NCBI GenBank assembly: GCA_030704615.1
Contig: CM060732.1
Coordinates: 75,454,001 to 75,518,000 of the forward strand
Origin: Takakia lepidozioides
Lineage: Eukaryota; Plantae; Bryophyta
DNA: 64,000 bases
Direction of reading: 5' to 3'
Shown: positions 5,630 through 62,189 of the stretch, in pieces
Position numbering within the stretch: the stretch's first letter is position 1
Layout: each line of letters begins with the position of its first letter
Position numbers and translations under genes: made by a program
The notes under the pieces: generated by a model
Databases searched by the model: none
What the model saw: only the letters and a program-made list of their open reading frames with translations
Told to the model about the DNA's origin: nothing

Positions 5630-8008
5630 ATGGCACATGTCGGGATGTTGCCAGGAAGACTGAAAGAGGCACTCAGCATGTTGAATCAACGAGGCGTGCA
5701 GGCAGACTCCAATATTTATGTTGGTGTCTTGCAAGAGTGTGTAAAGATGCGAAGCCTAGTAGCGGGAAAGCAAGTGCATGCTCACATAATCCGAAGTGAA
5801 TTCAAGCCAGACATCTTTCTACTCAACACCCTTGTCAACATGTATGCCAAGTGTGGGAGTGTCATGGATGCGTGCCAAGTCTTTCAGAAAATGCCTGAAC
5901 GAGATATGCTTACGTGGAATACAATGATAGCAGGATATTCTAAGAATGGGTGTGGTACCGAGGCTGTCCAGACCTATGAGCAAATGGTACGAGAAGGGGT
6001 GGCACCCAACAGGGTCACGTTTATCTGCATCCTGAAGGCATGTGCCAGCCTCTATGCCCTGGAAAAGGGCATTAAGGTCCATGCTGACATCATCAAGGCT
6101 GGAATTGTTCCAGATATTATCCTGGAAAATACCCTTATTGACATGTATGCCAAATGTGGGAGCCTATTGGATGCACGCCGAATGTTCGACAATATGGCTA
6201 CAAGAGATGTGGTCTCATGGAGCGCAATGATAGGAGGATATGCTCAGCATGGGTGTGGTAGGGAAGCTTTCAAGATTTATGAGCAAATGATACAGGAAGG
6301 AGTGACACCCAACAAGGTCACATTTGTCAGCATTCTGAAGGCTTGTACCAGCCTGGCCACCCTTGAAAAGGGCAGAGCTGTTCTCGCTGACATTATTAAA
6401 GTTGGAATTGCACCAGATATCATTCTAAATAATGCACTTGTTGACATGTATTCCAAATGTGGTAGCATAAAGGACGCACAACAAGTATTCAACAATATGG
6501 CTCAACGAAATGTGGTTTCATGGAATGCCCTGATAGCAGGATATGCCGAGCATGGGTATGGCTGGGAGTCTTTTGAGATCTATGAGCAAATGATATGGGA
6601 AGCAGTAGCACCCAACAATGTCACATTCATTTGCATTCTCAAGGCGTGTGCTAGTGTAGGAGCTCTGGAAAAGGGCCAAAACATCCATGCGGACCTCATC
6701 AAATTTAAAACTGTGCCAGATATCATTCTGGAGACTGCCCTTTTTGACATGTATGCCAAATGTGGGAGCTTAAGAGATGCACGTCAAGTGTTCGACAACA
6801 TGACTCAACGAAATGTGGTGTCATGGAGTGCAATGATAGCAGCATATGCTCAGCATGGTTGTGGTGAGGCTGCTTTTGAGATTTATGAGCAGATGATACG
6901 GGAAGGACTGAAGCCCAACCACGTCACATTCATTTGTGCTCTCAATGCTTGTGCAAACCTGGCGGCCTTGGAAAAGGGCAAACAGGTCCATGGTGACATT
7001 CTGAAAGCTAGGATTCCTTCCTACTTAAACTTGGAAAATACACTTGTTGACATGTATGCCAAATGCGGGAGCCTACAGGATGCACGTCAAGTGTTTGATA
7101 ATATGGCCGAACGAAATGTAGTTTCATGGAATGTTCTGATTGCAGGATATGCTCAGCATGGCTGTGGTAGGGAGGCTCTGCAATTATTTGAGCAAATGCA
7201 GTGTGAAGGGTTGAAGCCGGACGACATTACCTTTATTTGTCTTATCTCTGCATGTAGCCATCTGGGTCTAGTGGATGAAGGACGTCACTTCTTTGATTCG
7301 ATGTGGCCTGATTATGGCCTCAACCCTACAGTGGAGCATTTCGGCTGCATGGTAGACCTTCTTGGCCGTGCTGGCAGATTGGATGAGGCTGAGGACTTCA
7401 TTAACAAAATGCCAATTGAACCAGATGCTTCAGTGTGGAGGCCCTTGCTTGGTGCTTGCAGAATTCATGATAATGTGGAGCTAGCAGAACGGGTGGCAAA
7501 ATGCCTTCTCAAGTGGGGTCCAGAGGATGCTGCGACTTATGTGTTGCTATCAAACATCTATGCTGCAGCTGGAAGGTGGGATGACCAAGCAAAGGTGAGG
7601 AAAATGATGGAGGACAGACACGTCAGGAAAGAGCCAGGGCGCAGCTGCATTGAGGTGGACAACCAGTTGCATACTTTTGTTGTAGAAGATGGATCACATC
7701 CACAAATTGAGGAGATCCATGCTGAGCTGAAGAAATTGTCCATACAAATGAAGGAGGCTGGCTACATGCCTGACACCCGATTTGTATTGCATGATGTGGA
7801 GGAGGAGCAAAAGGAAGCCTCTCTTTGCCACCATAGTGAGAAACTGGCTCATCAATACACCCCCTGGCACGCCTATTCGTGTCGTTAAGAACCTTCGAGT
7901 GTGTGGTGACTGCCACACTGCCACCAAGTTCATCTCAACAATTGTTGGGCGAGCAGTTATAATACGGGATGGCAGCCGATTTCACCACTTCCAAAATGGG
8001 GTTTGTTC
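5630..8008 (+). pseudogene. PLS-class PPR RNA-editing factor with a frameshifted DYW domain (752-aa ORF 5630-7888; DYW remainder in a shifted frame to ~8008)
   Basis: Five L-S-P-type triplets (MYAKCGS, VVSW, VTF) are followed by L2/S2, E1/E2, a PG box (KEPGRSCIEV) and HSEKLA. The frame then shifts, and [22 protein letters not shown]...[12 protein letters not shown] continues in ORF 7782-8162. The terminal DYW is missing. Confidence 0.9.
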
Positions 8009-8149
8009 TTGTGGTGAAACCAGAACATGCCTGAAAGAAAAGGTGCTACTTGCTTATTTTCTTAAGCTGTTATCATTCCATGTAAGAGCTCATAAGGTTC
8101 AACAAAGGTTGCCATACAAGTGGTTAACATCCAACACCTCGATTTTCAA

Positions 8150-10149: not shown

Positions 10150-13100
10150 TCATCCGGTGTCAGCATTTAACATCGCATCCGCATCTCTTTGAGCTGCAGC
10201 TGCAGCCTCTATATCATAGTCATCCTCAGTCCCTAAACTCTCTTGTGACTGTAGATGGGACTCTTGCTCCCACGATGGTTGAGATGAGACCCCCTCCCAG
10301 CCAATCGGGTGACCACCATGCATTGCAGGGGGAAGTTCAATGAATGGCAATACTCCTTCTGATCTTGATGGCCCATTACCCAGAACGCGTGGACTTGTCA
10401 GCGAACTGCTCTTGTTATACACCAATTCTGTTCGACCAACCGAATAGATGGCTGAGGGATCCCCGGGGCCGCCCATTCCATCTGGAGAATGCATGTCCAT
10501 GCTCAGGCTAGCTCCCGTTCCATCCTGATCAGGTCCACTGGGGGATCCTGTCTCATAGGCTGTGACACCGTGATCTGAATTTTCAGCACTATCTTTCTTT
10601 GGCTTTTTCCATCGCTTGGTGGAGGATGTTCCATCGTCCTCAAAGTCTTCCTCCTCTCTTTCAGTGTGCAAGTACACCCACAGCTTGCGATCGCCATCAA
10701 ACCGGACACAAGGGTCTCTCTCGTAATGTAGGCGATCCAAGGCCCCGCTCACCACCTGATTGACCTGTAAACCAAGAACTTGTTCTTTCAGTGTTTGCTT
10801 GAAAGGATGAATGAAAATCATACTCCCATCATCCTTGCCAGTAACAAGAAATAGCTCTTGGTACCCATTCCACTCTCCCTGAGCCTGATGCCAGAAAGCT
10901 TCACAGGGTTACTGTGGTGGTAATGTGTTAACCCCGATAAGTTCTTTCACTTCAATGGAGTGATGTTGGTCCCTGGCTTCCATGCACACCCTAGAATATC
11001 AAGGTCTGAAGAGACAAGACTTGCTGGCACTAGACAGTTTCAAATGCACTCAATTTCAACTGCTTACTGGAGCTTTGACAATGAAGTGTGGGAAACTAAA
11101 TTCATGCCTGAGGTCAGAAGTGGTAGCTTCCAATTACATTTATACAACCCAAGACACACAGCTGAACACTGTTCATATTGTCATTGTCACTTCATCTGAT
11201 GGCATCTAGACCTTCAGTTGCTCTTACACCTCTTTTAGAAAAACAGGAACAGAACTGACCTGAGCATCAGAAACATCTTCAACAATGAACTGTGAGTCAC
11301 GGATCAGAGCACAGACGTCTGCTCGCGTGCCAATGCTTCCAGGGAGTCGAGCCGCCGCATCTCTCACCAGACACAAGATTGTCACGTGGGGCGGGCGGTC
11401 AGGCTTCAACATGAAGTGGTCCCGGGCCTTTGAAGTTGGCTTCCCGCCTCCTCGTCTCAAGGGAGCAACCACTGCTTTATGCCCGTCCGCCGTGGTGTAT
11501 GGAAAGGCTCGGTCAGGCAGTGAGTACCGGAGCAACTCCTCTCTGCGGAAATAGACCCTCATGTCCTCAGAGCTAGGAGCGATAGTCATCAGGCTTTTCT
11601 GGGCTCTCAGATCCCGAAACCTTTCCTTCTCGTCAACGGGAAGGGGCATTGGGGGTGGTGGGGGGAGCGGCAACTGCACAATTTGTTGTAGGGTATCTTG
11701 CCCGTGCTTTAACCAGGTAGCAAACATTTCCTCTAGTTTCAACAGTGTCTTTTGCGGAATCCCCCACTCCTCAGCTGTGACTTTGACCTCTGTGACATCC
11801 TGAGAACACAGTTGCAACAGAAACAGATTTGTCAATGAATTATGTAACCTTACTACGACATGTAAAAGACTGTCACTTCTGCAAGATGAAGGTGGCGAAG
11901 GAAGATTGTTCGGTGCATAATTACCTGCGAGGAAGTTGATGCAAGAGGGAGAGGCCCAGTCCATGACCATGCCTTCGTTTCTTTATCAAAAAGGACTAAA
12001 GGCTTCCAGCCTTTGGCTCCTTGAGGTGACACTTTGGATCCCATAATTTTCAATGCCCCTCGAACCAGATCCTGCACCCCTAAAACATCAGAAATCTTAC
12101 CAGTTGTCAAAACCGACTACTTATTGCAGATACTGTTGGCCACCATTAAAGTTCGGTATGAGCTGTCATCTTTTCAGATTATCAGGATGGTATAAAAAGA
12201 AGCCTCCAGGTGTTAAGAGAGCCATCCATCTGGCCTGTGCAAGGGCTGAGCTCTATCTGCGCCTTTGATGTTTATGCGAGAACTAGACAAATGACTAGTC
12301 ATGAGGCCCATAATAGTATGGGTATGTTCTTACTTGGAGAACTATACCTGCAGCGGCTCTTGAGATTCAAGAACACGGGGGTCCCCAGGATTGACTTGCA
12401 CTCGCCTGACAATCTCAGCAAACGGCACAGAGAAAGCTCCAGTGATTTTTTTCTCCACATCGGTTTCGTTTCCATCTGCCTTTTCACCAACCATACCCCC
12501 GGGAGATTGACTGTTTTGCGGAAGCAGACTCCCCTCTGATGACATGACATATGGAAGCTCCAAATCAAAACTCTCTCGCGCTGAATCACTCCTCCCAAGC
12601 GTGTCTCTACTCTCAGATGGGCCTTCTCCATAAGGTAACATTGTGGCTGCCCGGACAGCCGACAGCAGATGCGTGACAGAGAAAGGAAAAGTGGAGGCCA
12701 GAGACGGAATGGTCAATGGTGCCAGCTTTTTCGAGGACTTCACAGAATTGACCCCTCCTTTGTCTCCTGGAGAACCTGCAAAAAAAAGATTCTAAACACG
12801 TAAAAGACTGCCTGTAACAAACATTGATGCTAGCCAGAAGTGATCTAGTATGTCTGACTGTGCTCTATACAGACAGTTACTGCAGGGATAACCTATAATG
12901 CATCAACAAGTGAAAGCTATTAATTTCACCACTGCTAAGCATGTGCACTTAAGAGTAATGCAGTCTAAGCTCCCCCCCCCCCCTCTTTTCCCCTCTTATC
13001 TGCACTTCTTTCCCTTTTATTGGGCCCTGAAGCATTGAATCAGTAATGCTCCTCTAATCGTCCCAGCTGTGCCTAGTCAAGGACCATCCAAATAGTCGCA

Positions 13101-19116: not shown

Positions 19117-22100
19117 TTGCCCAATGTTCAACAAGAAAATGACATTATACAAAGCATTAACATAATAAAATTTCAGAAACAAATAAAGGATACCCCCACA
19201 TATTTTTGTATATGCTGCCAAATGTTATGTTTCCTGAAACAAGTTCAAAAAATAAAAAATAATTTGGCACGGCAGTTATCAATTTACTTTAACAGACACA
19301 TAGATGAAATTGTTCTATCATATATATGTAAAAATATTTATCTGCAATTAAAAACAATAAAATACCTAAATATCAAGTTCCCCATACAATATGTACAAAC
19401 ATTGTTTTGCCCTCCATGCAAAAATTGACACAACTAGAAGAACGACTTATATCCCCTCGTTTAGAATTTGTCCAAATATATAAGCTACATGGCCATGGAC
19501 AATATAAGATGCATGGAAGTGTAATTAATGTTGTATTAGATGTTGATCATACACAAACAATACTGCCACGCCTCCCTTACGATGATGCTACTTTAGGTAT
19601 TTACCTTAAAAGACGACTACAGTATAAATCTCCATATCTAGCAGGTAACATTCGACCTAATGTTGTTATGTTGGCTCTACATGATTTACTTCAAACCCCA
19701 TTATATGTAGATTTAAATATAACAATTCATCCTCAATGGGCAAGCCTTTTTGCTTTACATAATCAAAATCAGAGTGATGATCATGACATAGATAGAGATG
19801 TTAATGACACAAATGATACATTTGAAGAAGAACAAGACAATGTTGAAACATATACTATGATTCACAATTTTTTACATTATGAAACAATCCATGATTATGA
19901 AAATGAAATTTTGTCCGTAGCACCAGCAGAAAAATCTCATCCCATAGGACTTTTCAAAGACAAATACAGTGAAGAATTGAATTTCCCAACTTTATTTTTT
20001 GGCTGTTCTCGAAAACCTGATATTTACAAAAACTTTTCATAACAACAAATAGCACAGTGCGAATTACTACACAAAAATCATAACTTTTGTACAAATATAC
20101 CCAATTTGTTTTTCAAAGCTTCTAAAGTATGTATTTCTAAAGTCATGTCATCAAGCTCGATTCAAATTCGGAAAGGTACATTGAAGAGGACTACTAACAG
20201 CCGCTGAGGTTTGTGGTAATCCAAATATAGATCGAATTCTAAATTCATATATTGGTTTTCGAGATTTAAAAAGCTTGAGAACATCTCCAGATTATTTAGA
20301 AGACCTACGAAAAAACTTATTTGCAATGATTCGACAATTAGGTCCACCAACTTTTTTCATAACTCTTACTAGTGCTGAACGATTGTGGGAACCTTTAATT
20401 CAAGCACTTCACAAACTAAACTATGAAAAATTTAAATATACCTAACAAAATTGAGGATTTAGAACCGACACATATTGCAAAACTAATCCAAACTGATCCT
20501 ATAACATGTGCTAGATACTACGACCATCGTACAACAGCTTTTCGAAAAATGATAAAAAAAGAACCCAACCTTCTTGGTAAAGTAGAAGATTTCTTTTTCG
20601 TTACTGAGTTCCAAAGCAAAGGAAGTGAACATGACCATGGTCTCATTTGGATCAAAGATGCTCCATTATTTACAATTGATAATAATGATAAAATTCAATC
20701 TTTTGTGCAAAAATTTATTTCATGTGAAGCATCACTTTTACCACTTCATTTACAAGATGTGCAATCCCATAAACACACACGTACATGTAGTAAAAAAACC
20801 CAACCTATATGTAGATTCCATTACCCTTTACCACCTATGCCTTCCACTCAAATTCTTGCCCCGCTTGAAGAAAATGAAATAGTTTCAACATTACGTGCTC
20901 ATTTACAAGCTCAAGCCAATAAAATCTTTTTAAAACTACATGAAATGAATATGGGTGAAGATATTACTTTCACTGAATTTCTACAATCTTTAACATTAGA
21001 CGAAAACACGTATATCTTAGCTTTACGAAGTCGATTAACTAAGCCACAAATATTTCTTGAACGTACTCCCAAAAATATACGAACGAACGCATTTCCTAAA
21101 CATGTAGCATACCTATGGTGTGCAAACACAGACATACAATATATTTTAGATCCATATGCTGCTGCCACTTATTGTACATCTTACATGACAAAACTAGACA
21201 AAACAATAACATTTGAATTATGTACAATCATCCAAAAATGTGTTGCTGACAAAGTAGATTTTGATACACGAATAATAAAGTTGGGTAATGCTTTCTTAAA
21301 TTCTCAACAAATGTCTGCCCAACTTGCAACCTACTTAGTTTTATCACTTCCTTTGCATCATAGCTCTTGCTCATTTAAGTTTATTAATACCTCACCTTGT
21401 CAAAATAGGGCATTTGTGCTAAAACCTCAAAGTGCATTAGAAAAATTAGATCCACATTCCACTGACGTTATGTGTCCCTCTATTATAGATAGGTACGTAC
21501 GCAGGCCTATGGAATTGGATTCTTTATCTTTAGCTGAATTTTCTTCATCATATAATATTATAAATAATAAATTTATCAAATGTAAAAAAATGAAAGTAAT
21601 AAGATTTGTTCACTACAATAAACATAAAGATATAGAAAACTGGGCAAGAGAACACCTTCTTTTATACCATCATTTTCGAGGACGAGAAGAACAACAAATA
21701 GGTATTCATAACACATGGCATGAAGCATATTCTGAACATGCCCAATCTATATCACAAATAAAATCTCTTTTTACATATAAACTTCATGTGCAACAGGACA
21801 CAGACTCCAATGTTGGTTGGGATGACTTACAAACTTGTTCATTTGAATTGTCAAACCACCATAACCAAAATATGTGGACAAACATTGATCATCAAAGCAA
21901 TGACGACGACAACATGCACTTTGCTATTCCAATAACAGATAATAGTAATACAGAGACATATAACATTCACGATGTTTTTTACATTAGACCCCGTAATACA
22001 CGCATAACATCCGTTCACAATGAAAATAACTCTTCTTTATCAAGATGCCCAACCCTAATGGATGAACAACAATTTCGTTGTCTTCTAAGATAGCTTAATC

Positions 22101-48843: not shown

Positions 48844-50586
48844 TCAACTCTCTAGGCACCTGTTTACCCCATTCTTGCAATCCTTGGTGAGGTCATTGAA
48901 TGTCTCAATCTTCATCTTGCCTTTGTACAACATTTCTGAGTCTATTTCTACCCTCATGTACCCGTCAAAAGGAACCGGGCTGCCACCGTTCAGGGCCATG
49001 GTTGCATTGTACCATTCACTATTGACACTCCACAGGTCCTTAAAATCATCCAGGACATAAACCTTGTAGAGGCCCCTGAGCTTGTCAAAGTATGTGGGCT
49101 CGACCTCATTGGTAGCAATATAGATCTTCCGGCCCTGCAAAATCCTATGTTCCAGCTTTGCTACAATATTTTCAGGTGACGTGTCTGCATCCAACTGTGG
49201 CCAAAGCTCCTTGTCTTTCACTTTCCACCCGCGTACCACATGCAGAGTATCAAAATCCCAATCAAGCTTATTGCAAATTGCAGTTACAATATCCATCAGT
49301 CGCTTTGATTTCCACATGAAGTGCCAGGGCCGTTCAATATACTTCTCCGCCTCCCCCTCGCAGACACGGTACCAGTAATTGTTGGCCTCCTCTTTGTCAT
49401 CAAACTTCCTATACAGAATAGTGCTGGTTTCGTTCTTCAGCTGTGAGGGTGCCACCTTATAGTCCGTCACATAATGTACGTTGAGCTCATGCTGGGGATG
49501 CTTAGAGTTCCAATCGAGCCATTGCTGCTCAAAGGTATTTTTCTCAATGATAGGCGTCACCTCCTTGAGATGCTCATAATCGAAATAGAATCTAAAATCC
49601 TTGTCAATCTCGTCGGTATGGCCTGGATTGTTCTCTGCCGACAGACACAACTCCAGATCCATCACGAACGTACGGCTGAGGTAGCGCGCCTCTCCTAGTG
49701 CGCACAGGAAGCTCCACATAAACTGATTCATGCTCTTACAATAATCCCCCCCTCGTTGGTAGAAGAGATAGTTGTGCTCGCCAAATGTCCTGTTCAGCTT
49801 CGCTGAGATAGGGCCCACTGCGTCCAGCACCACATCCACCCCTCCCTCAAGAGTCTGTTGCTCTGCAGCTTGGGCGGGGAGACCAGTTCTTTCCCCATCG
49901 CCAATTTTAGGTCTCCTAGTAGGCCGGGCACTGACCCCAGAATGCCAAGCTCCTATTGTCAACACAGAAAATGAACAGTCTTTGTTCCTCTTCAATGCGT
50001 ACCGTCTAAAGTCCCTGTACATCCTTGGGGTCTTCATATTCTTGGCACGGTACTTCCAAGCAACATCACATTGTTTGTCTGTGGAGCCCCTTACGGGAGC
50101 ACGATACTGGTAGAAATTGAGGGCTGGAAAATGATCCAGATTGTATTGTTCAATGGCGGCCTTAACCCCCGGATCCGAGCACTCAATCGTGGCGGTGGAG
50201 GTATCGCAGCTTCCTTCCAGCCGTGCGGCTTCCTCAGCTTTGACAGTGGCATTTTGCACAAATTCTTGAGATATCGCGGGGGGAACGGTTGAGTAGTTGG
50301 ACTCGCTCTTCATGTCATCGCCTGTGATGATGACGGTGTCGTCCGTTTGGAAAGTCGACTTGTCAATGCTGCTGAACAACCGGTTGTATGATTTCGCCTG
50401 CTGATGCCATGGATCGGGGGACTTGTATGTTATAGCAATCACTGTGAAGGTGAGGACCGAGATAACAAAAAATGCAAAACACACATTGCTTGCAATCCTC
50501 ACAAGGCGCTGGCCAAGCGCCTCGGTATGCAGGTTCCCTTGAGACAAAACCCTGTCTAAGAAGGAAGGCTTGTCTAAGAACCTCAT
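48844..50586 (-). CDS. SUB1-like type II membrane protein (O-fucosyltransferase-fold family, At4g08810/At2g04280-like), 580 aa, intronless
   Basis: N-terminal TM segment (NVCFAFFVISVLTFTVIAITY) and family motifs CDVAWKYR, YRDFRR, GGDYCKSMNQFMWSFLCALGEARYLSRTFVMDL, KDFRFYFDYEHLK, WYRVCEGE, IYIATNE and ETFNDLTKDCKNGVN. Confidence 0.9.
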   Translation of the reverse strand: MRFLDKPSFLDRVLSQGNLHTEALGQRLVRIASNVCFAFFVISVLTFTVIAITYKSPDPWHQQAKSYNRLFSSIDKSTFQTDDTVIITGDDMKSESNYSTVPPAISQEFVQNATVKAEEAARLEGSCDTSTATIECSDPGVKAAIEQYNLDHFPALNFYQYRAPVRGSTDKQCDVAWKYRAKNMKTPRMYRDFRRYALKRNKDCSFSVLTIGAWHSGVSARPTRRPKIGDGERTGLPAQAAEQQTLEGGVDVVLDAVGPISAKLNRTFGEHNYLFYQRGGDYCKSMNQFMWSFLCALGEARYLSRTFVMDLELCLSAENNPGHTDEIDKDFRFYFDYEHLKEVTPIIEKNTFEQQWLDWNSKHPQHELNVHYVTDYKVAPSQLKNETSTILYRKFDDKEEANNYWYRVCEGEAEKYIERPWHFMWKSKRLMDIVTAICNKLDWDFDTLHVVRGWKVKDKELWPQLDADTSPENIVAKLEHRILQGRKIYIATNEVEPTYFDKLRGLYKVYVLDDFKDLWSVNSEWYNATMALNGGSPVPFDGYMRVEIDSEMLYKGKMKIETFNDLTKDCKNGVNRCLES

Positions 50587-53413
50587 TTTGAAGGTCTAAC
50601 GTCTGCCCACTTCGTACAGCTTATTAGTACTAATGTGGGCGCAGCTGCCCACCGCTGCCAGCACCCTGGAACTGCATGAGCCGTCCCACCGTCACTCCCC
50701 CCTAACAACAGCGATCGTTTGCTACCTTCACACTGTCCGCCTTCCTCTGCTCCTCCCCAAAGTACAGTGTCTTTGTGAACTGCACGCCGAAGGCTGTGGA
50801 CTGACTTTCTCCTTCTTTCGTGAAGTGGGCAACCTTCGGATTAGGGTAGGGTAGATAACCCGCCCATAAACATGATTACCGCGCTAACTGCTTTCAGTTT
50901 TTTAGTAGATGGATCTCGTATCGTATCTTCGAATGTTGTGGGTATAATTGTATCTCAATTTAGTGGAGTGTGTACTGAAATGCATGTGTGTGTGTCTGTG
51001 AGGGAGGGAGAGAGAGAGAGAGCTTCAAAGATTGGATGTGAAAAAATAGACAACCATGATCGAAAACAACCACGGAAAATATGTTGAAAGCTTTCAGAAT
51101 GTGTGAATAAGACTCCGCTCATGCAACCAGGGAAAGCGACTGAAAGGAGAACTGTTTCAGGTCAAGTATCGACAAGTTAAGCTCAGGGGATGAGCAAGGA
51201 GGCGGCATACACGCAAATACCCTACAACCCTAGATACAGCCCTGGAGGAAACGAAGATTTTTCAGACCCTGGTCAACGGTGGAGCAATCGAGGCACTAAG
51301 GTGAATGCCTTCTAAGTTACAGGACAGGAGACAACGAAAAAGCTTCGCAAAGTAAGGATAGTGGCCAGGTTCTCTCTTAACGTCACTGTGACTGGCATGC
51401 AAACAGATACGCATGTGTTACATTTGTTGTAAGCTAGTGGAGCAGCTCTCGATCAAACTCATGCTTTCCTAACTGAGGACAACTTTAGCCCATTAATCAT
51501 CATTCAGTTTCTGTAACCGGACTGTCGTTGACCAAGCGCTATGGAAATTACAGGTTGACACGAGTACCCTGATGGTCCAGAGTGGCAGCAAGGTTGGTTT
51601 CTTTCTACTTCTCTCTCTCTCATACTTTCCTTTTTTGTTTTACCACCAATTGAGATTTGGTAGTTAGGGGTGGGGCGGTGGCTAAATAAATTAGGGTTGT
51701 AATTGTCAGCTACTTGCAGCCAGGGAGAGGATCTTTGCAGTTTTGTGGAGGCAATGTAGATCCATTCCTGAGCATAAGAGTACGAAAAAGGCACGGGGAC
51801 TATGTACAGCTGCAAGAAACCTGTGTGGGCGGAGGGTGAATTGGGCAAGCTGTATGCAGCTAGGGTAACTATCATGAATCTAGATTTAGTATCTTCCTTC
51901 TTCTTCAGCAAATTTGGGTTTGTTCAGCTCATCAGATGGACGAGATGAGAACTGTCAGTTTGCTCCTTTAGGGCTCTTTCTTCCCGCTACCGCAAGGGGT
52001 TTGCTTGAAGAGCATGCACGCTTCTTTGTCATACCGGGCTTTGTGAATTTGGTTGTGGATCTCTTGTGTGACTGAGTGTTTTGACATGTACTGCTACTGG
52101 AGTTGCATGCAGATACTTAATGGAGGTAAGGAGAGGCTTTGGAAGAATGTTTTGCTAACCCTGGTCAATGAAGCGGACAACAACATGCATTGAAAACTGT
52201 CATGAATATTCATTCTGCCTTTGTCTCTCTTTACCAGCAATTCGGCACAGGAGCTAGTATGGGAGGCGGTGGTGGCATTTTCTATGTATATTAGTTGGCA
52301 TGGTCAGCTACTTGCGGCAAGGGGGAAGATCCATGCGTTTTGGTTGTGGAGGCTGGGATAGCTCAGCAGGTGGGAGTGGAGTGTGGGGGCAGATCCATCC
52401 TCCCTCATCAGGTTTCATGCAAAAGAGCACCAACAAGGAACTGTGGTTTGAGAGCTACAACAAACCTCCATGGGTTGATAGCAACTGGAATCAGGGGCAG
52501 CGCAGTTGTTAAATAGAAACCTCCACCATGACAATTGCTTTTCACAGAGGGTTAAGAGATGGAAGTCCACTAGAACTCTTCTGGCACTTCTGAGGATGTG
52601 AGGACACTATGTGAGGAAAACTGAAAGAATGCATTTTGCATTTTTAACCAAGGGGGCATTGCGGCAGACTCCATTACCTATGTCTATCGCTTGCAGGAGT
52701 ACATCAAAGTAAAAGGCCTAGCTGAGGGAAAGCAGGTGCACACACACCATCAAAAGTTGGTTTCAGGCCAAACAGTTTCCACAGAACACCCCCATCAACA
52801 TGCATACCAAGTGCCGGAGCATTCCCTAGTGTTTGACAAAATGCCTGAATGAGGTGTGTTTATGTGGAAAATCTTGATGGCAGGATGTGCCAAACATAGG
52901 TGTCATGGAGGCCTTCAAGAAATGATACAGCAAGGGTGGTGCCCAATGAAGATATGTTAGCTTGCGTTTTCAAGAGGTGTACTAGCCAGGCAGTCTTGGA
53001 GAAGGGGAAAGAGCTGCATGCTGACATTATGAAAGCTGGAATCATGCTAAATATCATCTGACACTGCTGATCAACTTCTATGCCAAATCCGGGAACAGAA
53101 AGGATGCAACTTGAGTGTTCAACCATATGCCTCGAACAAATGTGGTCTCGTGAGCACAGGATATGCCCAGCAACATGTGTATGGTATGGGGGCTTGTGAG
53201 ACCTGTGAGCAAATGATAGGGAAAATGGTAACACCCAACCAAGTCACATTCAGTTCCTTTCTCAACACCAGTCAGGGCAACCCTCTAGAAGGGCTCCATG
53301 CTGATGTTAATTGTTTCTCTGCTTCATTCTTCGCTTCCTGGCTTGGCTTTCTTCGCGCTTCTCTTCTTTCCTTCATTCCTTCCTTCCTGTAGCTCCGTTC
53401 GCACTTCTTGTCC

Positions 53414-56400
53414 ATGGCTACATGTTCCTTGTTTCCTGGAGAGGCTACAGTTCCATTTGATCATGTGAAGAAGGATGGCGGACGAGTTCAATACTGGTAC
53501 ACTAAGGATGAGCATGCTACTATGATTGCCTACTGCCACTCCAGGTGTAGAGAGGCCAAGGGGAAAGGAAAGGCTCGGCCTAAATTTCGATGTCCTTACT
53601 GTGGAGACACAAAGACCGACAAAAGTAGATTAAATAGGCATATCGTGGATGGTTTGGTTGCCTGCCAATCTCGGCCAAGGGGAACAAAACCCTTTCCTGA
53701 TGCGGAGGGCAAGCATGCCCATGCGGTTGAAGTTATTGTACAGTCTGTTCCGAAAGCGTCAGTTGATGCATATCATGCATGGGTTTTGCAAAATAGAGGT
53801 GCTTTGAGTGAGGTTGCACCTCGTGCTGTTGTATGTCCTCCCCTTGTCACTCCTCCTGTTGTCTCTTCTTGTGTTCCTAGTCCTTCGGTTCAACAGGCTC
53901 CAAATGCTAAAGACAAGCGACGCATCAGCCCACCTTTAACCGGCCCTATTGCGAAGAAAATCAAAGTCCTTGCACGGAAGTCCCATCTGCTGAAGAAAGG
54001 GAAAACTCCAGGGTCAATCCTTCTACTACCGCATGGCCTTGTTCCTGAGTTTGATTTTCCGAGGCTGAATGATGAGGGATTCTGGCCGGCTTTTCAAGAT
54101 TTTGTTTTGGAAGGCAGTGCCATGAGCAGGTCGGCAAAGGCCAAGAGCCAATGGGTTCTATCGAATGACAATACTGTAATTTCACTTTCCCTACCAATTG
54201 GCTGTTGTTGTTCTCCGCTCTGTTGTGTCACTCTTTATTGTGTCACCCCTTTCATGTCACTCTTAGCATCGTGTATGTTGTGTAATCCCTGACCGCGTCA
54301 CCCTTCTTGGTGTCGCCCATGTCAAACCTCTTTGCCACCTCTGTTGGTGCACCCCCTCTTTTGTTATGTCACCCCTTATTGTGTCACCCACTGCATCATG
54401 TCACCCAGCCCTTTGCGTGAGTGTCGCCCCTCGCTATGTCACCCCAGGCCCCATAATACTTGGCATCATTTACCTCTCTTGGTGTCACCCTCCTTTGTTG
54501 TGTCCCCTAAAAGTCAATTCTCTCAGTGTCACCCCTCCGTATCCCCTCTGTTGTTGCACCTCTGTTATGTCACCCCCTACATTATGTCATCCCAGACAGT
54601 GTATCCCTCCGCATCATGTCACCTCTCTTGGTGTCACCCTTCTTTGTTGTGACACCCCTACCACTTAATTGTCTCGGTGTCATCCCTCTGTGTCAAATCT
54701 GTTGTGTCCACCTTGCATCATGTCACCCTCTTCAGTGCATCCCTTCACATCATGTCACCTCTTTTGGTGTCACCTCCGTTGTCGTGTCACCCTTCTGCAC
54801 CTCTCTTGTGTCACCCCTTGCATCATGTCACCCCTTTGTGTGTCACCCCAGATTCCATAACCCTTGGCATCATGTCACCCTCCTTTATTGTGTCCTCCAT
54901 CTTGTGATTCCCGACTGTGTCACCCCTTGCTGTGTTACTGTTTTCTCGGTCATATGTTTGTCCGTGTATACTTATTCTGAGATGATTTTGTGCAGGGCAC
55001 CAGGCACCATATTAGAAGCGGCGACTTGGATAGTGTCGTCCTAGCCCATAATGCCTTCACTAGTCGGCGGTTAGATGATCCAAGGCTGGTGGATGAGTTG
55101 AATCGAGTGGAGGTGTATTTGAAGTGCATTGGGCATCCTGACATGGCACAGAAGAAACAAAGCAAAAGAACAGAAGAAATTACACCACCAACTAAGAACA
55201 TCCAAGACACGCAGGCTGACACGGTAATGGTAGAGGGTGCGATCTCAGAACAAGGTGGTCCTTCCAACAACATGTGTTTGGCTGCTATTGCCCCTGCTGT
55301 TGAGGGTGTTGACAGTCCCAACCCTCTTGTCATCACAGTTTCAACAGATGGAATACCAGGTGTGTTGTTGCCACAGCCGTTGCAATTCACCCGTGAATTT
55401 GCAGAACAGTTAATTCACAAAATTGAGAAGGCCACCATACCCGTAGCTGCAGAGGCACCACTGCTTTTGAGAGTTTTAGCCAACAGTGATTTAAAAAAGC
55501 ATGGACGATCTGTATCCCATTGTCATCCCACATTGGGATTGACTTACGACTTTCTGGATACCTCTCTTACAGCCCAAAAAATCAAGGACTTGAATGACGA
55601 GTATTATGGTGTTGGTATGGTGTACTTCGCACAGAGTGGTGACGGGATCGAGAGCCTTCACGCTGACCTCAGTCAGCTAGCAAATTGTATAGGTGCAGTG
55701 GATATGTTAGATAGGTCAGTTAAGATCCAGGATGTTGTTCAGTTTTGCAAGACAAGCCGCCGTCGCGCTGTCCATCACTACGCTCGGGAATACAAAGAGG
55801 AATTTGTCAACCTTTGGTGTTTTGGCATGTTTGGTACTGATTCATCAACTTACATGGACTTCAATGATATCTTGGGCGTTCAGTTAATGAGAGACCTTGG
55901 CTGTATACTCCCGTATTTGTGTAAGTGTATTTCTTTCTACATATGTTTTATGTTGTTGTCTTGCTTGTCTTGCTTGTTTACTCTTATGTCACTTCTTGTT
56001 GTTTTGCATGCATATGTCATACATGTCACCCCCATGTCAGTCAGATGTTCCTTTGTATGTTAGTGTCACCACTATTAATCCTATTATAACTCCTGATGTC
56101 TCATCCCTGACTACGTCACCCCCGGTCGTGTCACGTCAGGCAGTGTCACCATCCTCTTTGAACATTGTAGATGATCACCTAATGAACCTATTTTGATGTC
56201 ACCCCTGCCAGTGCACTACGACCCCGGGATGTCCCTGACTATGTCACCCCTGGCCGTGTCACTCAATGATGTGTCACCCCTGTTAGGCATCCTTATCTTT
56301 CTATTTATTTGTGTCACCCCTCTTCTATGTATCCCCTTCATCACCCACCCTTTTCATGTCTCCCCTTTGTATGGCTCTTATATGTAACCCCTTACTTTGT

Positions 56401-57209
56401 CACCTTCTGATCTTCTTATGTCACTCCTGTCTATGTCACCCTGTTCCAATTCTAAATATTTTGTGTGAGCAGATGAATCCGAGCTTATGACCGCCGAAGT
56501 GCACTCTGCATATCAAAACCTCTTTTCTGCTCAGCGTGAGGTACTTGAAGCAGTCCAGGGGTCTGTTCCACCTAGCCGGTGCACAGAGGAGGTGGTGTCA
56601 AGTCAGCGTGCTATTGTTTCCTTGTCTCATGTTGGCGAATTGCATTCCACCCTGCTAGGCTTGCATCACGACGAGCTGCCGCAAGATTTGCCCAAAAACT
56701 CTCATAACAATGATGATGACACAATGCAGTTTCACACGCAGATCCAACCCTCTAGTGTTTTTACTCCTAGCCTTTCTGATAGAGACGGTGACTTCAGAAC
56801 TCCGCACGGGCATATCAGTGACAGGGATGTAGTAAACCTTTCTGGGGATGACAACATCAAGAAAACTGGAGTTTCTGTGGAGGGTGACACGGCTAAGGAT
56901 GACACTGATGTGCAGTTCAGAACTCCTCGCGGGCAAGTCAGTAGTGACAAGGAAATTGTCAACCTCTCTCGGGATGACAACATGGGGGAGGTTCCATTTC
57001 GATTGGAGGGTTACACTCATGAGCGGGACATTCGTTCGGAGTTCAGAATTCCGCATGGAGGGGTGATACCAGCAGCTCCTTCTAACGGCGACACACCTGG
57101 TCACGAACCGGGTGACAAATCTAAGGGTGACATGCTGCATGAGGCAGGTGACATCCTGCAGGAGGGTGACATGGTCCAGCAGGGTGACATTCCTAAGGGC
57201 GACATTTGA
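53414..57209 (+). CDS. Unknown C2HC-type zinc-finger protein, about 807 aa, probably transposon-derived and 3'-truncated; exons 53414-54175, 54996-55920, 56473-57209
   Basis: A CT-rich leader precedes the ATG, and the protein contains CPYC-x12-H-x7-C. Donor GTAATT / acceptor GTGCAG (phase 0) and donor GTAAGT / acceptor GAGCAG (phase 1) join three ORFs into one open frame. The stop falls at the PPR junction. Confidence 0.6.
54176..56472 (+). repeat. TGTCACC(C)-motif arrays filling both predicted introns (54176-54995 and 55921-56472)
   Basis: Manual count gives over 20 GTCAC(C/T) copies in intron 1 and about 14 GTCAC in intron 2, nearly all on one strand, with variable spacers. Confidence 0.9.
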
Positions 57210-57899
57210 AACAGACATCAGTCTGGAGAATACCCTGGTCAACATGTGTGCCAATTGGGAAAGCACAAAAGGATGCAAATAGAGTGTTCAATTATCTGGC
57301 TCATCAAAGTTATAACTTCTAACACAATGGGTGATTGCGGCAGGCCATGCCCAGCATGGTGGTAGGGAGGCTCTCAATGTGTTTTTAGTCTTCTGGCTTC
57401 TGTCTAATTTAATCACCATTGGAGACCAAAAGGGGGGCAGGCCTGCCCGCTCCAAAACCCAACCTTGATCCCCCTCTTTCACAATCAAGAAACCTTGTTG
57501 GGTTGCTGTTCGTGTTCCTCTTCCATTTTGGATCCTTGATACAAGTAGAGCATGTTGTCTGTTCATCATAGCACTTGAATCCTTACATGTAAGATGTTGG
57601 AGCACAAATCTCTTCTCCAGAACTTAGAGGCAAATTGAAAATTCAGATATTGCAACATTTGTCAAATCAACATCATCCTGGATCCAACCGAATTATTGAC
57701 CTGATCTCCGAGGCTCGTAGCTATGGATAATATCCAATCTCTTCTTTGTGACTGCTTTTTGGGTCCTGGTTTGGCATCAATTCCCCCAAAGACTCAGAAA
57801 GCTCCTACCCTCCCAGGTGCAGGTGCCACAATAATGCCCAACCTGTAGCTTTGGCCTTCCCAAGGTTCTGCCCTGCAGCTCATATCACGCAGGTCCCGC

Positions 57900-59264: not shown

Positions 59265-62189
59265 TCACCAGTAGTCCCCACAAGAACAAACCCCATCTTT
59301 GAAGTGGTGAAAACGGTTGCAATCCCGTACAACAATGTCTCGCCCAACGATCCTTGAAATCAGCTTGGTGGCCTTGTGGCAGTCAGTACACACTCGAAGG
59401 TTCTTGATGAAACGAAGAGGCGTCCCTGGGGCTGTGCTGATCAGTCCAAAAGCCATTGCCAACCTCTCACTGTGGTGGCAAAGAGAAAATTCCTTTTGCT
59501 CCTCCTCCAAATCATGCAATACAAAGCGCGTGTCAGGCACGTACCCTGCTTCCTTCATCTGCCCCAACAATCTTCCCAGCTCAGCATGGATTTCCTCAAT
59601 TTGTGGATGCAATTTATCATCTGCAACAAATGTGTGCACTCCGTTGCCGACCTCAATGTAGCAGCCACCTGGCTGCTTCATGACACCTCTGATTTTCATC
59701 ATTTCTCTGACCTTCCAAGCATCGCCCCACCTGCCAGCTGTGGCATAGATATTTGATAGCAACACATACGTTGTAGCATCCTGTCTATCCAACTTGAAAA
59801 TAGATTTAGCCGCACGTTCTGCCAACTCCACATTCCCATGAATTCTGCATGCACCAAGCAAGGCCTTCCACACAACAGCATCTGGTTGCACTGGCAAATT
59901 GTTAATGAAGTCCTCAGCCTCAAGCAATCGCCCTGCACGGCCAAGAAGGTCCACCATGCAGCCAAAGTGCTCCACTGTGAGAGTGAGGTCATGATCTCGA
60001 ATCAGGGAATCAAAGTAGTGCTTGCCTTCATCCACTAGGCCCCCATGGCTACATGCTTGGAGGACACATATAAAGGTGATATTGTTTGGCTTCAAGCCAC
60101 CCCTTTTCATTCTTTCAAATAGTTGCAAGGCCTCCCCACGACAACCATGCTGGGCATATCCTGCAATCATCACACTCCATGACACCACATTTCGTTCAGC
60201 CATGTTGTCAAAAACTCCCTTTGCATCCTCGATGCTCCCGCATTTGGCATACATGTCCACGAGGGTATTGTTCAAAATTATATTTGGTACAATTCCAGCT
60301 GTCATGATGTCAGCGTGGACCTCCTTCCCTTTCTCTAGGGCTGCCAGGCTTGCACACACATTGCAAACGCAAACAAACGTGACCTCATTGGGCCTCACCC
60401 CCACCAACATCATTTGCTCATAGGTTGCCAAAGCCTCCAATGCACAACTCTTCTGGGCATATCCTGCGATCATTGCATTCCAGGACACCACATTTCTTTC
60501 AGCCATGTTGTCAAACACTTCCTTTGCATCCTTGATGCTCCCACATTTGGCATACATGTCCACGAGTGTATTGTTCAGAATGATATCTGGTACAAATCCA
60601 GCTTTCATGATCTCGGCATGTACCTCTTTGCCCTTTTTAAGGGATGCAAAACTCGCACAGGCATTGCAAATGCAAACAAATGTGACCTGGTCCGGCTTAA
60701 CACCTTCCTGCATCATTTGCTCATAAGTCTCCAAAGCCTCCAATGCACACTTCTTGTGGGCATATCCTGCGATCATGGCATTCCAGGACACCGCATCGCG
60801 TATAGGCATATTGTCAAACACTACCTTTGCATCCTCGATGCTACCACATTTAGCATACATGTCCACAAGTGTAGTATTAAGAATCATATTTGGTACAATT
60901 CCAGCTTTCATGATGTCATCATGGACCTCTTTTCCTTTTTCCAGGGCTGCGATTCTTGCGCATGCATTGCATACGCAAACAAAGGTGACCTGGTCCGGCT
61001 TCACCCCTTCCTGCATCATTTGCTCATATGTCTCCAAAGCCTCCATCCCGAACCCATGCTGGGCATATCCTGCGATCATTGCACTCCATGAGACCACATT
61101 TCGCTCAGCCATATTGTTGAACACAACCCTTGCATCCTCAATGCTCCCGTGTTTAACATACATGTCCACGAGGGTTGTATTCAGAATGACATCAGGTACA
61201 ATTCCAGCTTTCACGATGTCAGCATGGACCTCCTTGCCCTTTTCCAGGGCTGCCAGTTTTGCACACGCCTTAAGAACAGATACAAATGTGACCTGGTTGG
61301 GTGTCACTCCTTCCTGCATCATTTGCTCATAGGTCTCCAAAGCCCCCATCCCACACCCATGTTGGGTGTATCCTGCAATCATCGCACTCCATGACACTAC
61401 ATCTCGTTCAGCCATATTCTCAAACACTACCTGTGCATCCTTGAGGCTCCCACATTTGGCATACATGTCCACGAGGGTATTGTTTAGGATCATATTTGGT
61501 ACAATTCCAGCTTTCACAATGTCAGCATGGACCTCTTTACCCTTTTCCAGAGCTGCAAGGCTGGCACAGGCCTTCAGAACACAAACAAAGGTGACCTGAT
61601 TCGGGGTCACCCCTTCCCCTATCATCTGCTCATAGGTCTCCAAGGTATCCCTACCACACCCGTGCTTGGTGTATCCTGCCATCATTATATTCCACGTTAT
61701 CACACCTCGTTCTGGCATGTTATCGAACGATCTGCGTGCATCCATGATGCTCCCGCATTTGACATACATGTTAACAAGGGTGTTGTGTAGAAACATGTTG
61801 GGCTTGAATGCACTTTGGATAATGTGGGCATGCACCTGTTTTCCCGCCGCCAGGCCTTTCATCTTGATGCATTTATGCAAGAGACAGATGTAAGTATCAG
61901 AATCTGCTGAAATACCTCTTTTGTTCAAAATGTGCAGAGCATCTTTCAGTCGTCCTGCCTCACATAGTGTCCTCACATATCCACAAGTGCCAGAGGAGAT
62001 CTTGTCTCTTTGTCCTTGTTTGGACGCAGTTGTCATGGTGGAGGTGCCTGAGTTTATTGCTTCTGCTGCTGCTGCTTCCAGTTGACCATCTATGAATGCA
62101 GCTCTCTTGTAGTTATCAATCCCTAATGGCTCATTGGTACTCTCATGCTTCAAATCCAACCCTCTGCGATAGATCTGAACCCACACCAT
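59265..62189 (-). CDS. PLS-DYW pentatricopeptide repeat protein (organellar C-to-U editing factor), 974 aa
   Basis: About 20 P/L/S motifs, E1/E2, a PG box (KQPGGCYIEV), HSERLA, CTDCH, and a terminal CSCGDYW*. The ORF is uninterrupted. Confidence 0.96.
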   Translation of the reverse strand: MVWVQIYRRGLDLKHESTNEPLGIDNYKRAAFIDGQLEAAAAEAINSGTSTMTTASKQGQRDKISSGTCGYVRTLCEAGRLKDALHILNKRGISADSDTYICLLHKCIKMKGLAAGKQVHAHIIQSAFKPNMFLHNTLVNMYVKCGSIMDARRSFDNMPERGVITWNIMMAGYTKHGCGRDTLETYEQMIGEGVTPNQVTFVCVLKACASLAALEKGKEVHADIVKAGIVPNMILNNTLVDMYAKCGSLKDAQVVFENMAERDVVSWSAMIAGYTQHGCGMGALETYEQMMQEGVTPNQVTFVSVLKACAKLAALEKGKEVHADIVKAGIVPDVILNTTLVDMYVKHGSIEDARVVFNNMAERNVVSWSAMIAGYAQHGFGMEALETYEQMMQEGVKPDQVTFVCVCNACARIAALEKGKEVHDDIMKAGIVPNMILNTTLVDMYAKCGSIEDAKVVFDNMPIRDAVSWNAMIAGYAHKKCALEALETYEQMMQEGVKPDQVTFVCICNACASFASLKKGKEVHAEIMKAGFVPDIILNNTLVDMYAKCGSIKDAKEVFDNMAERNVVSWNAMIAGYAQKSCALEALATYEQMMLVGVRPNEVTFVCVCNVCASLAALEKGKEVHADIMTAGIVPNIILNNTLVDMYAKCGSIEDAKGVFDNMAERNVVSWSVMIAGYAQHGCRGEALQLFERMKRGGLKPNNITFICVLQACSHGGLVDEGKHYFDSLIRDHDLTLTVEHFGCMVDLLGRAGRLLEAEDFINNLPVQPDAVVWKALLGACRIHGNVELAERAAKSIFKLDRQDATTYVLLSNIYATAGRWGDAWKVREMMKIRGVMKQPGGCYIEVGNGVHTFVADDKLHPQIEEIHAELGRLLGQMKEAGYVPDTRFVLHDLEEEQKEFSLCHHSERLAMAFGLISTAPGTPLRFIKNLRVCTDCHKATKLISRIVGRDIVVRDCNRFHHFKDGVCSCGDYW

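Follow-up and report, generated by a model that had tools for sequence, protein, structure and literature searches.

The window analyzed here is a stretch of 64,000 nucleotides (nt) of the Takakia lepidozioides genome (contig CM060732.1 of assembly GCA_030704615.1, positions 75,454,001 to 75,518,000). Within it, a block of approximately 3.9 kb interrupts a degenerate pentatricopeptide repeat (PPR) gene and carries, on the plus strand, a zinc-finger gene of three exons, the two introns of which are occupied by dense arrays of a short DNA word. The exons measure 762, 925 and 737 nt, agree in phase, and together make up 807 codons followed by a stop; GTAATT and GTAAGT serve as 5′ splice sites, and each intron closes with CAG. 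The gene is preceded by a CT-rich leader (53311–53413). Exon 1 (53414–54175; 254 codons) encodes a conserved N-terminal domain (residues 1–135), a basic stretch that resembles a nuclear localization signal, and an LLLPHGL..GFWPAFQ block. It is followed by intron 1 (54176–54995; 820 nt), by exon 2 (54996–55920; 308 codons and 1 nt), for which neither a known domain nor full relatives were found, and by intron 2 (55921–56472; 552 nt). Exon 3 (56473–57209; 2 nt, 244 codons and the stop) contains three peptide repeats of approximately 41 residues (FRxPxG...) that start at positions 56793, 56916 and 57042, and closes with a Gly-Asp tail. The tail is encoded by a GG[TC]GACA array with a spacing of 15–21 nt (57111–57206), and the insert ends in this array or at its end.

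The protein has a single zinc finger akin to the classical type, with the ligand pattern C-x2-C-x12-H-x7-C (C2HC), which spans residues 58–84 (positions 53585–53665) and starts with F-R-C-P-Y-C. The extended pattern, F-x-C-x2-C-x3-K-x5-L-x2-H-x7-C, is a C2HC variant of the classical F/Y-x-C-x2-5-C-x3-F-x5-L-x2-H-x3-5-H motif. Pfam searches with all exons, with the read-through open reading frames (ORFs) and with P0001, the relative described below, gave nothing beyond sub-threshold C2H2-like matches (for the gene itself zf-C2H2_4, with 18 bits where 27 are required, E 0.0045). In the PDB sequences the best likenesses are to individual fingers of the proteins ZFP57 and CTCF (E about 0.005), and exons 2 and 3 have no relatives there. 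AlphaFold2 predictions reached a predicted local distance difference test score (pLDDT) of 45.5 for residues 1–139, from a two-row alignment, and of 31.5 for the second half of exon 2, values that are too poor for a comparison of folds.

Transcription of the locus was analyzed with contigs of sequencing runs, which were aligned to positions 52700–57800 (5101 letters). Four of the runs are DNA from the probable source sample; the other two, X5 and X6, come from other samples and studies and contain about half of the stretch's words. Neither intron has any depth in X5 or X6, and the contigs of these two runs skip from GT to AG exactly, at 54175/54996 in both runs and at 55920/56473 in X5; neither joint is present in the DNA run X1. 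X5 and X6 are therefore RNA, and both introns are real. The left boundary of the insert is crossed by an X6 contig (53163–53333, record 17) with 0 differences, and the right boundary by one contig each of X5 (57040–57344, record 13) and X6 (56483–57315, record 21), which means that the locus itself is transcribed. The RNA-like contigs run on into the PPR flanks (52700–53278 and 57337–57795) at a depth similar to that of the zinc-finger exons, and one X5 contig reaches approximately 490 nt further upstream. Apparently, the zinc-finger gene is transcribed as part of the PPR pseudogene transcript. Transcription includes the degenerate PPR gene itself (52700–53310 and 57210–57800), a pseudogene by which the inserted gene seems to be driven. 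The covered leader (52700–53413) contains 25 ATGs, and the contigs do not show the start site; if transcripts begin upstream, such an ATG-rich leader argues against efficient translation.

The original prediction, made from the letters of the window, had joined three ORFs at canonical sites and in matching phases into about 807 stop-free codons. The GT..AG model agrees with this, and the joints it implies at 54175/54996 and 55920/56473 are found exactly in the RNA-like contigs. The C-x2-C-x12-H-x7-C finger, for which no accompanying domain had been recognized, is likewise confirmed, with all four ligands retained in P0001 and only sub-threshold C2H2 matches in Pfam. It had also been argued that the retained introns speak against retroposition, and both introns prove to be real and spliced. 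A retrocopy is ruled out by the two introns, which the DNA contains and the RNA lacks, and by the absence of a poly(A) tract or A-run at the 3′ end of the insert.

The limits of the insert were placed by aligning the interrupted gene with an intact PPR unit from another part of the window. The PPR-like sequence on the plus strand shares 24–34% identity with the intact PPR-DYW gene at 59265–62189 (tblastn). The 5′ part of the degenerate PLS-type gene, which was the target of the insertion, lies at 52381–53308, and RNA-like contigs cover 52700–53333. Homology to the PPR gene ends at ...CAT GCT GAT GT (53308–53311) and restarts at approximately 57197–57203 with ATTTGAAA..CAGACATCAGTCTGGAGAATACC. 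At the left junction (53300–53311) the PPR codons ...CAT GCT GAT GTT are followed by the insert; the right junction and the 3′ remnant of the pseudogene occupy 57197–57420. The PPR motif has lost no more than about 6 nt, and the 3.9-kb block is therefore a clean insertion. The PPR flanks contain stops in all frames, 9–18 per frame on the left and 2–4 on the right. The block is a real insertion into a PPR gene that was degenerate already at that time or became so only later. The TGA stop of the zinc-finger gene (57207–57209) is located within letters that align to the PPR unit, so that the long ORF lacks a stop codon belonging to the insert. Joints between 53042 and 57222, seen in DNA and RNA contigs, were considered as an empty site and rejected, because these contigs represent paralogous PPR genes with 15–16 other letters between the two points.

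No terminal inverted repeats (TIRs) or long terminal repeats (LTRs) were found at the block. No inverted or long direct repeat links its ends, and the best inverted pairs are matches of the word arrays inside it. The ends read AATTGTTT... and ...CTAAGGGCGACATT and lack the Helitron signature (5′ TC, 3′ CTRR with a hairpin); no CACTA ends are present at the block, and the window contains no transposase or Ulp1 in or beside it. A Helitron or an LTR element was ruled out for want of such ends. The 9-mers at the two junctions, GCTGATGTT (53300–53308) and GGCGACATT (57198–57206), agree at five of nine positions. Each of them matches seven of the nine letters of GCTGACATT, a piece of the PPR motif that is present one repeat earlier (53020–53031), and the right-hand 9-mer also keeps the phase of the GGTGACA array of the insert. 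Nine nucleotides is the size of the target duplication made by Mutator elements. The earlier placement of the insertion inside a PPR pseudogene is in agreement with these boundaries, as is the suggestion of a 3′ truncation, given the stop codon in PPR-derived letters. The statement that the block has no TIR, LTR, poly(A) or Helitron end also holds; as to the target-site duplication, which had likewise not been seen, the two junction 9-mers show a partial likeness.

A relative of the zinc-finger gene was recovered with exon 1 by a word-index protein search, which returned one protein, P0001 (300 residues, E 1e-100), from a Logan contig of 1540 nt, L001. Over the full length of exon 1, P0001 is 61% (BLASTP) or 65% (MAFFT) identical to the window's protein. 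L001 has the same boundary between exon 1 and intron 1 as the window, an intron of 268 nt, and, at 1481–1540, the first 20 codons of exon 2, which are approximately 60% identical to those of the window. All four zinc ligands and the finger helix DKSRLNRH are identical in the two proteins. For the exon 1 pair the synonymous divergence (dS) is 0.68 and the ratio of non-synonymous to synonymous divergence (dN/dS) is 0.40, with 0.22 for residues 1–135 and 0.69 for the rest. Judged from this sequence comparison, the zinc-finger gene belongs to a genuine protein family whose N-terminal finger domain is under constraint, and the substitution rates show purifying selection on that domain between the two lineages.

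At an identity of at least 90%, the insert is covered by one DNA contig of 6578 nt, with a flat depth of 25.4 over its whole length, while the PPR flanks are hundreds to thousands deep. The insert is single-copy at this level of identity. The exception is a unitig of 181 nt with a depth of 1112, which matches 54004–54051 and has loose ends unlike the window. One loose end agrees with L001 at all 30 letters and the other at 18 of 19, and the type represented by P0001 and L001 is present in the organism's DNA run at approximately 44 times the single-copy depth. Further relatives were not recovered: an exhaustive phmmer search of 1.84 billion representative proteins with exon 2 gave 0 matches, word-index searches with exons 2 and 3 found none, and a tblastn search for a paralog of the three exons in the rest of the window was negative. 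Because the word index covers proteins of 0.55–1.75 times the query length only, relatives of approximately 800 residues could escape it, a limit that does not apply to the exhaustive exon 2 search. Feature searches of the ESM Atlas with exon 2 and residues 1–139 returned nothing usable, and a search with the N-terminal alignment in viral, prokaryotic-genome and metagenome contigs, collections that are poor in plant DNA, yielded no relatives. The block had been proposed to be a fragment of an undescribed mobile-element family, a proposal that is borne out in part. The exon 1 relative, the shared intron position and the abundance of the P0001/L001 type favor a repeated family, but the block itself is single-copy at 90% identity or above; the term undescribed needs qualifying, and applies to a zinc-finger protein without described relatives in the phmmer, word-index and Pfam searches.

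The most distinctive feature of the gene is the content of its introns. GTCAC cores number 22 in intron 1 and 14 in intron 2, and all 36 lie on the plus strand, at a density of 25–27 per kb; elsewhere in the window the figure is approximately 0.5–0.7 per kb on each strand. The exact sequence TGTCACCCC occurs 14 times in the window, against 0.53 occurrences expected, and every copy is within one of the two introns. The eight-letter intron word has the consensus R-T-G-T-C-A-C-C-C, with a nearly invariant core, whereas the spacers and the spacing (14–126 nt) vary; intron 1 displays in addition a higher-order repeat of approximately 136 nt. On the plus strand of the first two exons, exon 1 has one bare core (TGTCAC at 53845), and GTCACC or anything longer is absent from both. 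Exon 3 contains 10 inverted copies, six of which are GGTGACA read as Gly-Asp and are crowded into its last 100 nt.

The homologous intron of L001 contains nine copies of TGTAACCC, which differs from the window word TGTCACCC by one letter. Both variants also occur together, in inverse orientation, upstream of the CT-rich leader of L001 (approximately 210 nt, L001 1–210), as GGGTTACA (three copies) and GGGTGACA (two copies). The window word may derive from a variant that the family already possessed and that then spread. This upstream region of L001 has no counterpart in the window. The alignment of the two leaders is of low complexity and does not place the 5′ truncation point; the window copy begins inside the leader, and has therefore lost its own promoter region. 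Neutral slippage alone is hard to reconcile with an invariant core in variable spacers, a single orientation in two introns, and the one-letter variant of the paralog.

We consider it probable, at roughly 60%, that the block derives from a transposon accessory gene, of which it is a stranded copy in decay, and that its word arrays act like the target arrays of the VANDAL/VANC system, the functional part of this reading being drawn by analogy. The block would represent a three-exon zinc-finger gene, copied with truncated ends and lacking its own promoter, from a family that is repeated in this genome. Members of the family would keep arrays of one eight-letter word in their non-coding DNA, RTGTCACCC in the window and TGTAACCC in the abundant relative, and the window copy would be a stranded fragment of an element from a diverged sub-lineage. 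The arrays are candidate binding sites of the zinc-finger protein and may serve sequence-specific self-recognition, possibly anti-silencing, as the VANC target arrays do.

VANDALs are non-TIR Mutator-like elements that encode VANC anti-silencing factors (Fu 2013; Hosaka 2017, PMC5735166; Sasaki 2023, PMC10398659). In Arabidopsis VANDAL elements, the VANC target motifs have one orientation and a high density, and are found in introns as well as in intergenic and terminal non-coding regions; motif types (C-type and T-type) differ by one letter between subgroups, the VANC intron has dynamic tandem repeats, and the variable parts of the VANC proteins contain peptide repeats in tandem (PMC5735166). 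The present family resembles this organization in several respects: dense arrays of a word in one orientation fill non-coding parts, including the introns of the presumed factor's own gene; lineages carry words that differ by one letter (TGTCACCC and TGTAACCC); arrays grow by tandem duplication; and the protein combines a conserved domain with a variable region containing tandem peptide repeats. By contrast, none of the three exons resembles VANC, PMD/MAIN-like domains or PDB entry 9LNK in sequence (Pfam at E ≤ 1 and PDB sequence searches), the candidate reader is a single C2HC finger, the window copy stands alone without transposase or element ends, and the host is a moss-like plant, whereas VANC has been described as dicot-specific (PMC13547354). 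The protein is thus not a VANC homologue, and any similar function would be convergent.

The family also shares features with En/Spm. The TnpA protein of this CACTA element is an element-encoded accessory DNA-binding protein with many subterminal 12-nt sites in the element. An accessory protein and many copies of a short site are common to both cases, although binding is putative here, and the TnpA sites are subterminal, in both orientations, and not located in introns. No Pfam match to Transposase_24/TnpA was found in the gene.

With regard to how the copy arrived, templated repair of a break, as known for filler DNA, probably fits better than transposition followed by loss of both ends, because the PPR gene is nearly continuous across the insert and no element ends were carried along. 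The block resembles filler DNA in being a clean foreign stretch with almost no target loss and no element ends, and in a possible short homology at the right junction (GGYGACATT against GCTGACATT of the PPR gene). At 3.9 kb it is long for filler DNA, and its donor was not found.

The present state of the copy is revealed by the RNA contigs, which differ from the window by nine non-synonymous changes, one of them a stop, and four synonymous changes. X5 carries an A>T change at 57117 that produces a premature stop at codon 778 (K778*), and X6 has a 12-nt in-frame insertion behind 57144, in the Gly-Asp array. This array is accordingly length-polymorphic within the species. Exon 3 contains six single-nucleotide polymorphisms (SNPs) in each of the two runs, and is at least as polymorphic as the PPR flank. 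The polymorphism of exon 3 and the loss of the promoter region, along with a stop codon taken from the flank and a long leader rich in ATGs, point to a decaying relic that has yet to gain a stop, rather than to a constrained gene. Nothing shows that the zinc-finger copy still works.

Several observations weigh against a decaying accessory gene with VANC-like arrays. The number of SNPs is small and exon 2 has no non-synonymous change, and 807 open codons in an expressed gene also fit a working gene. The copy-number estimate of approximately 44 comes from one unitig; no full-length element was seen, and no transposase was seen beside the relative. The finger helix DKSRLNRH is identical in the two paralogs though their words differ, so that if the protein reads the word, the choice between C and A is not made by that helix. 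A single finger alone is, moreover, a weak DNA binder. Finally, the junction 9-mers, alike at five of nine positions, may be a degenerate duplication of the size made by Mutator elements.

The copy may alternatively be a working gene of the host. It would then encode a zinc-finger factor that acts in trans, either domesticated or still functional, and that recognizes a word of its own; transcription would begin at the PPR promoter or within the CT-rich leader. The 807 open codons next to a stop-filled PPR gene are in line with this, as is transcription with correct splicing in two other samples, from which the insertion is common to individuals; the word arrays are kept with an invariant core, and the differences in exon 2 are synonymous only. 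However, the ratio of nine non-synonymous to four synonymous changes, the premature stop allele and the indel in exon 3 speak against constraint, the gene has neither its own promoter region nor a leader free of upstream ATGs (25 in the covered part), its stop codon is borrowed from the flank, and the ORF may simply be young. We therefore regard a working gene as unlikely. A second possibility, to which we attach little weight, is that the block is a complete small non-autonomous element, a derivative of non-TIR Mutator-like elements, which transposed into the PPR gene with a 9-nt target duplication that has since decayed. VANDAL-type elements lack long TIRs (PMC13317346), GCTGATGTT and GGCGACATT are each two positions away from GCTGACATT, and such a duplication would make the PPR gene fully continuous. 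Against it, the two 9-mers are alike at only five of nine positions and the right one is in phase with the GGTGACA array, no terminal repeats and no second copy at 90% identity or above were found, and an ORF without its own stop points to truncation.

The block might also have been copied by break repair from an ordinary multi-copy host gene family with minisatellite-rich introns, in which case the arrays would reflect neutral slippage. The lack of a transposase, of Ulp1 and of element ends in or beside the block is consistent with such an origin, and the tandem structure of approximately 136 nt in intron 1 is typical of slippage or unequal exchange. Slippage, however, does not readily yield an invariant core between differing spacers, with 36 of 36 copies on one strand in two introns, nor a relative with a one-letter variant both in the same intron and upstream, and that relative is approximately 44-fold deep; a conserved host family would, furthermore, be unusual in having no homologues among the proteins searched with exon 2. 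This origin appears improbable to us. An assembly artefact, in the form of a chimeric join of a PPR pseudogene with an unrelated gene, was conceivable in view of the highly repeated PPR genes and the depth of the flanks, but RNA-like contigs from two other samples and studies cross both junctions with 0–5 differences, and the 6578-nt DNA contig spans the whole block. Misassembly was rejected on account of these independent contigs, and we judge its probability to be negligible.

The insert lies in the neighborhood of ordinary host genes, and therefore in gene-bearing DNA rather than in a transposon desert. These genes include exons of an NFRKB-type winged-helix protein (10150–11970, minus strand), a two-exon cytochrome P450 gene (33118–34928, minus strand) and a gene for a DUF7074/DUF7075 protein (48844–50586, minus strand). 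A second PPR-DYW gene is found on the plus strand at 5630–8018; its match to the intact PPR gene shifts frame at approximately 7848–7858, just before the DYW end, which may be a frameshift or indicate a pseudogene. The remnant of a Helitron-type replicase, with ORFs matching DUF6570 (E 1e-13) and Helitron_like_N (E 4e-9), is present on the plus strand at 19407–22093, approximately 31 kb upstream of the insert.

Among transposon proteins, only VANC of dicots is known to counteract silencing in a sequence-specific manner. If the arrays are neutral minisatellites, the locus is an ordinary transposon fragment. A further-reaching proposal, possible but doubtful, and based on the analogy with VANDALs, is that mosses evolved VANC-like self-recognition independently of dicots, by means of a C2HC zinc-finger protein that bears no relation to VANC. 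Together with the TGTAACCC family, this locus would form a natural specificity-switch pair, in which 61–65% protein identity accompanies a word altered at one letter; a trans-acting factor may still come from the stranded copy, and the last exon would have been forced to Gly-Asp because its DNA must carry the inverse word. The locus provides direct evidence that the introns bearing the word arrays are true, spliced introns, and its word, one letter away from that of the paralog, offers a ready-made pair for binding tests. A gene that is stranded in a host pseudogene, and kept transcribed by that pseudogene, is in a situation where domestication could start. Should the VANDAL-like reading be true, a non-homologous zinc-finger gene with the same array layout in a moss-like plant would mean that the strategy arose more than once.

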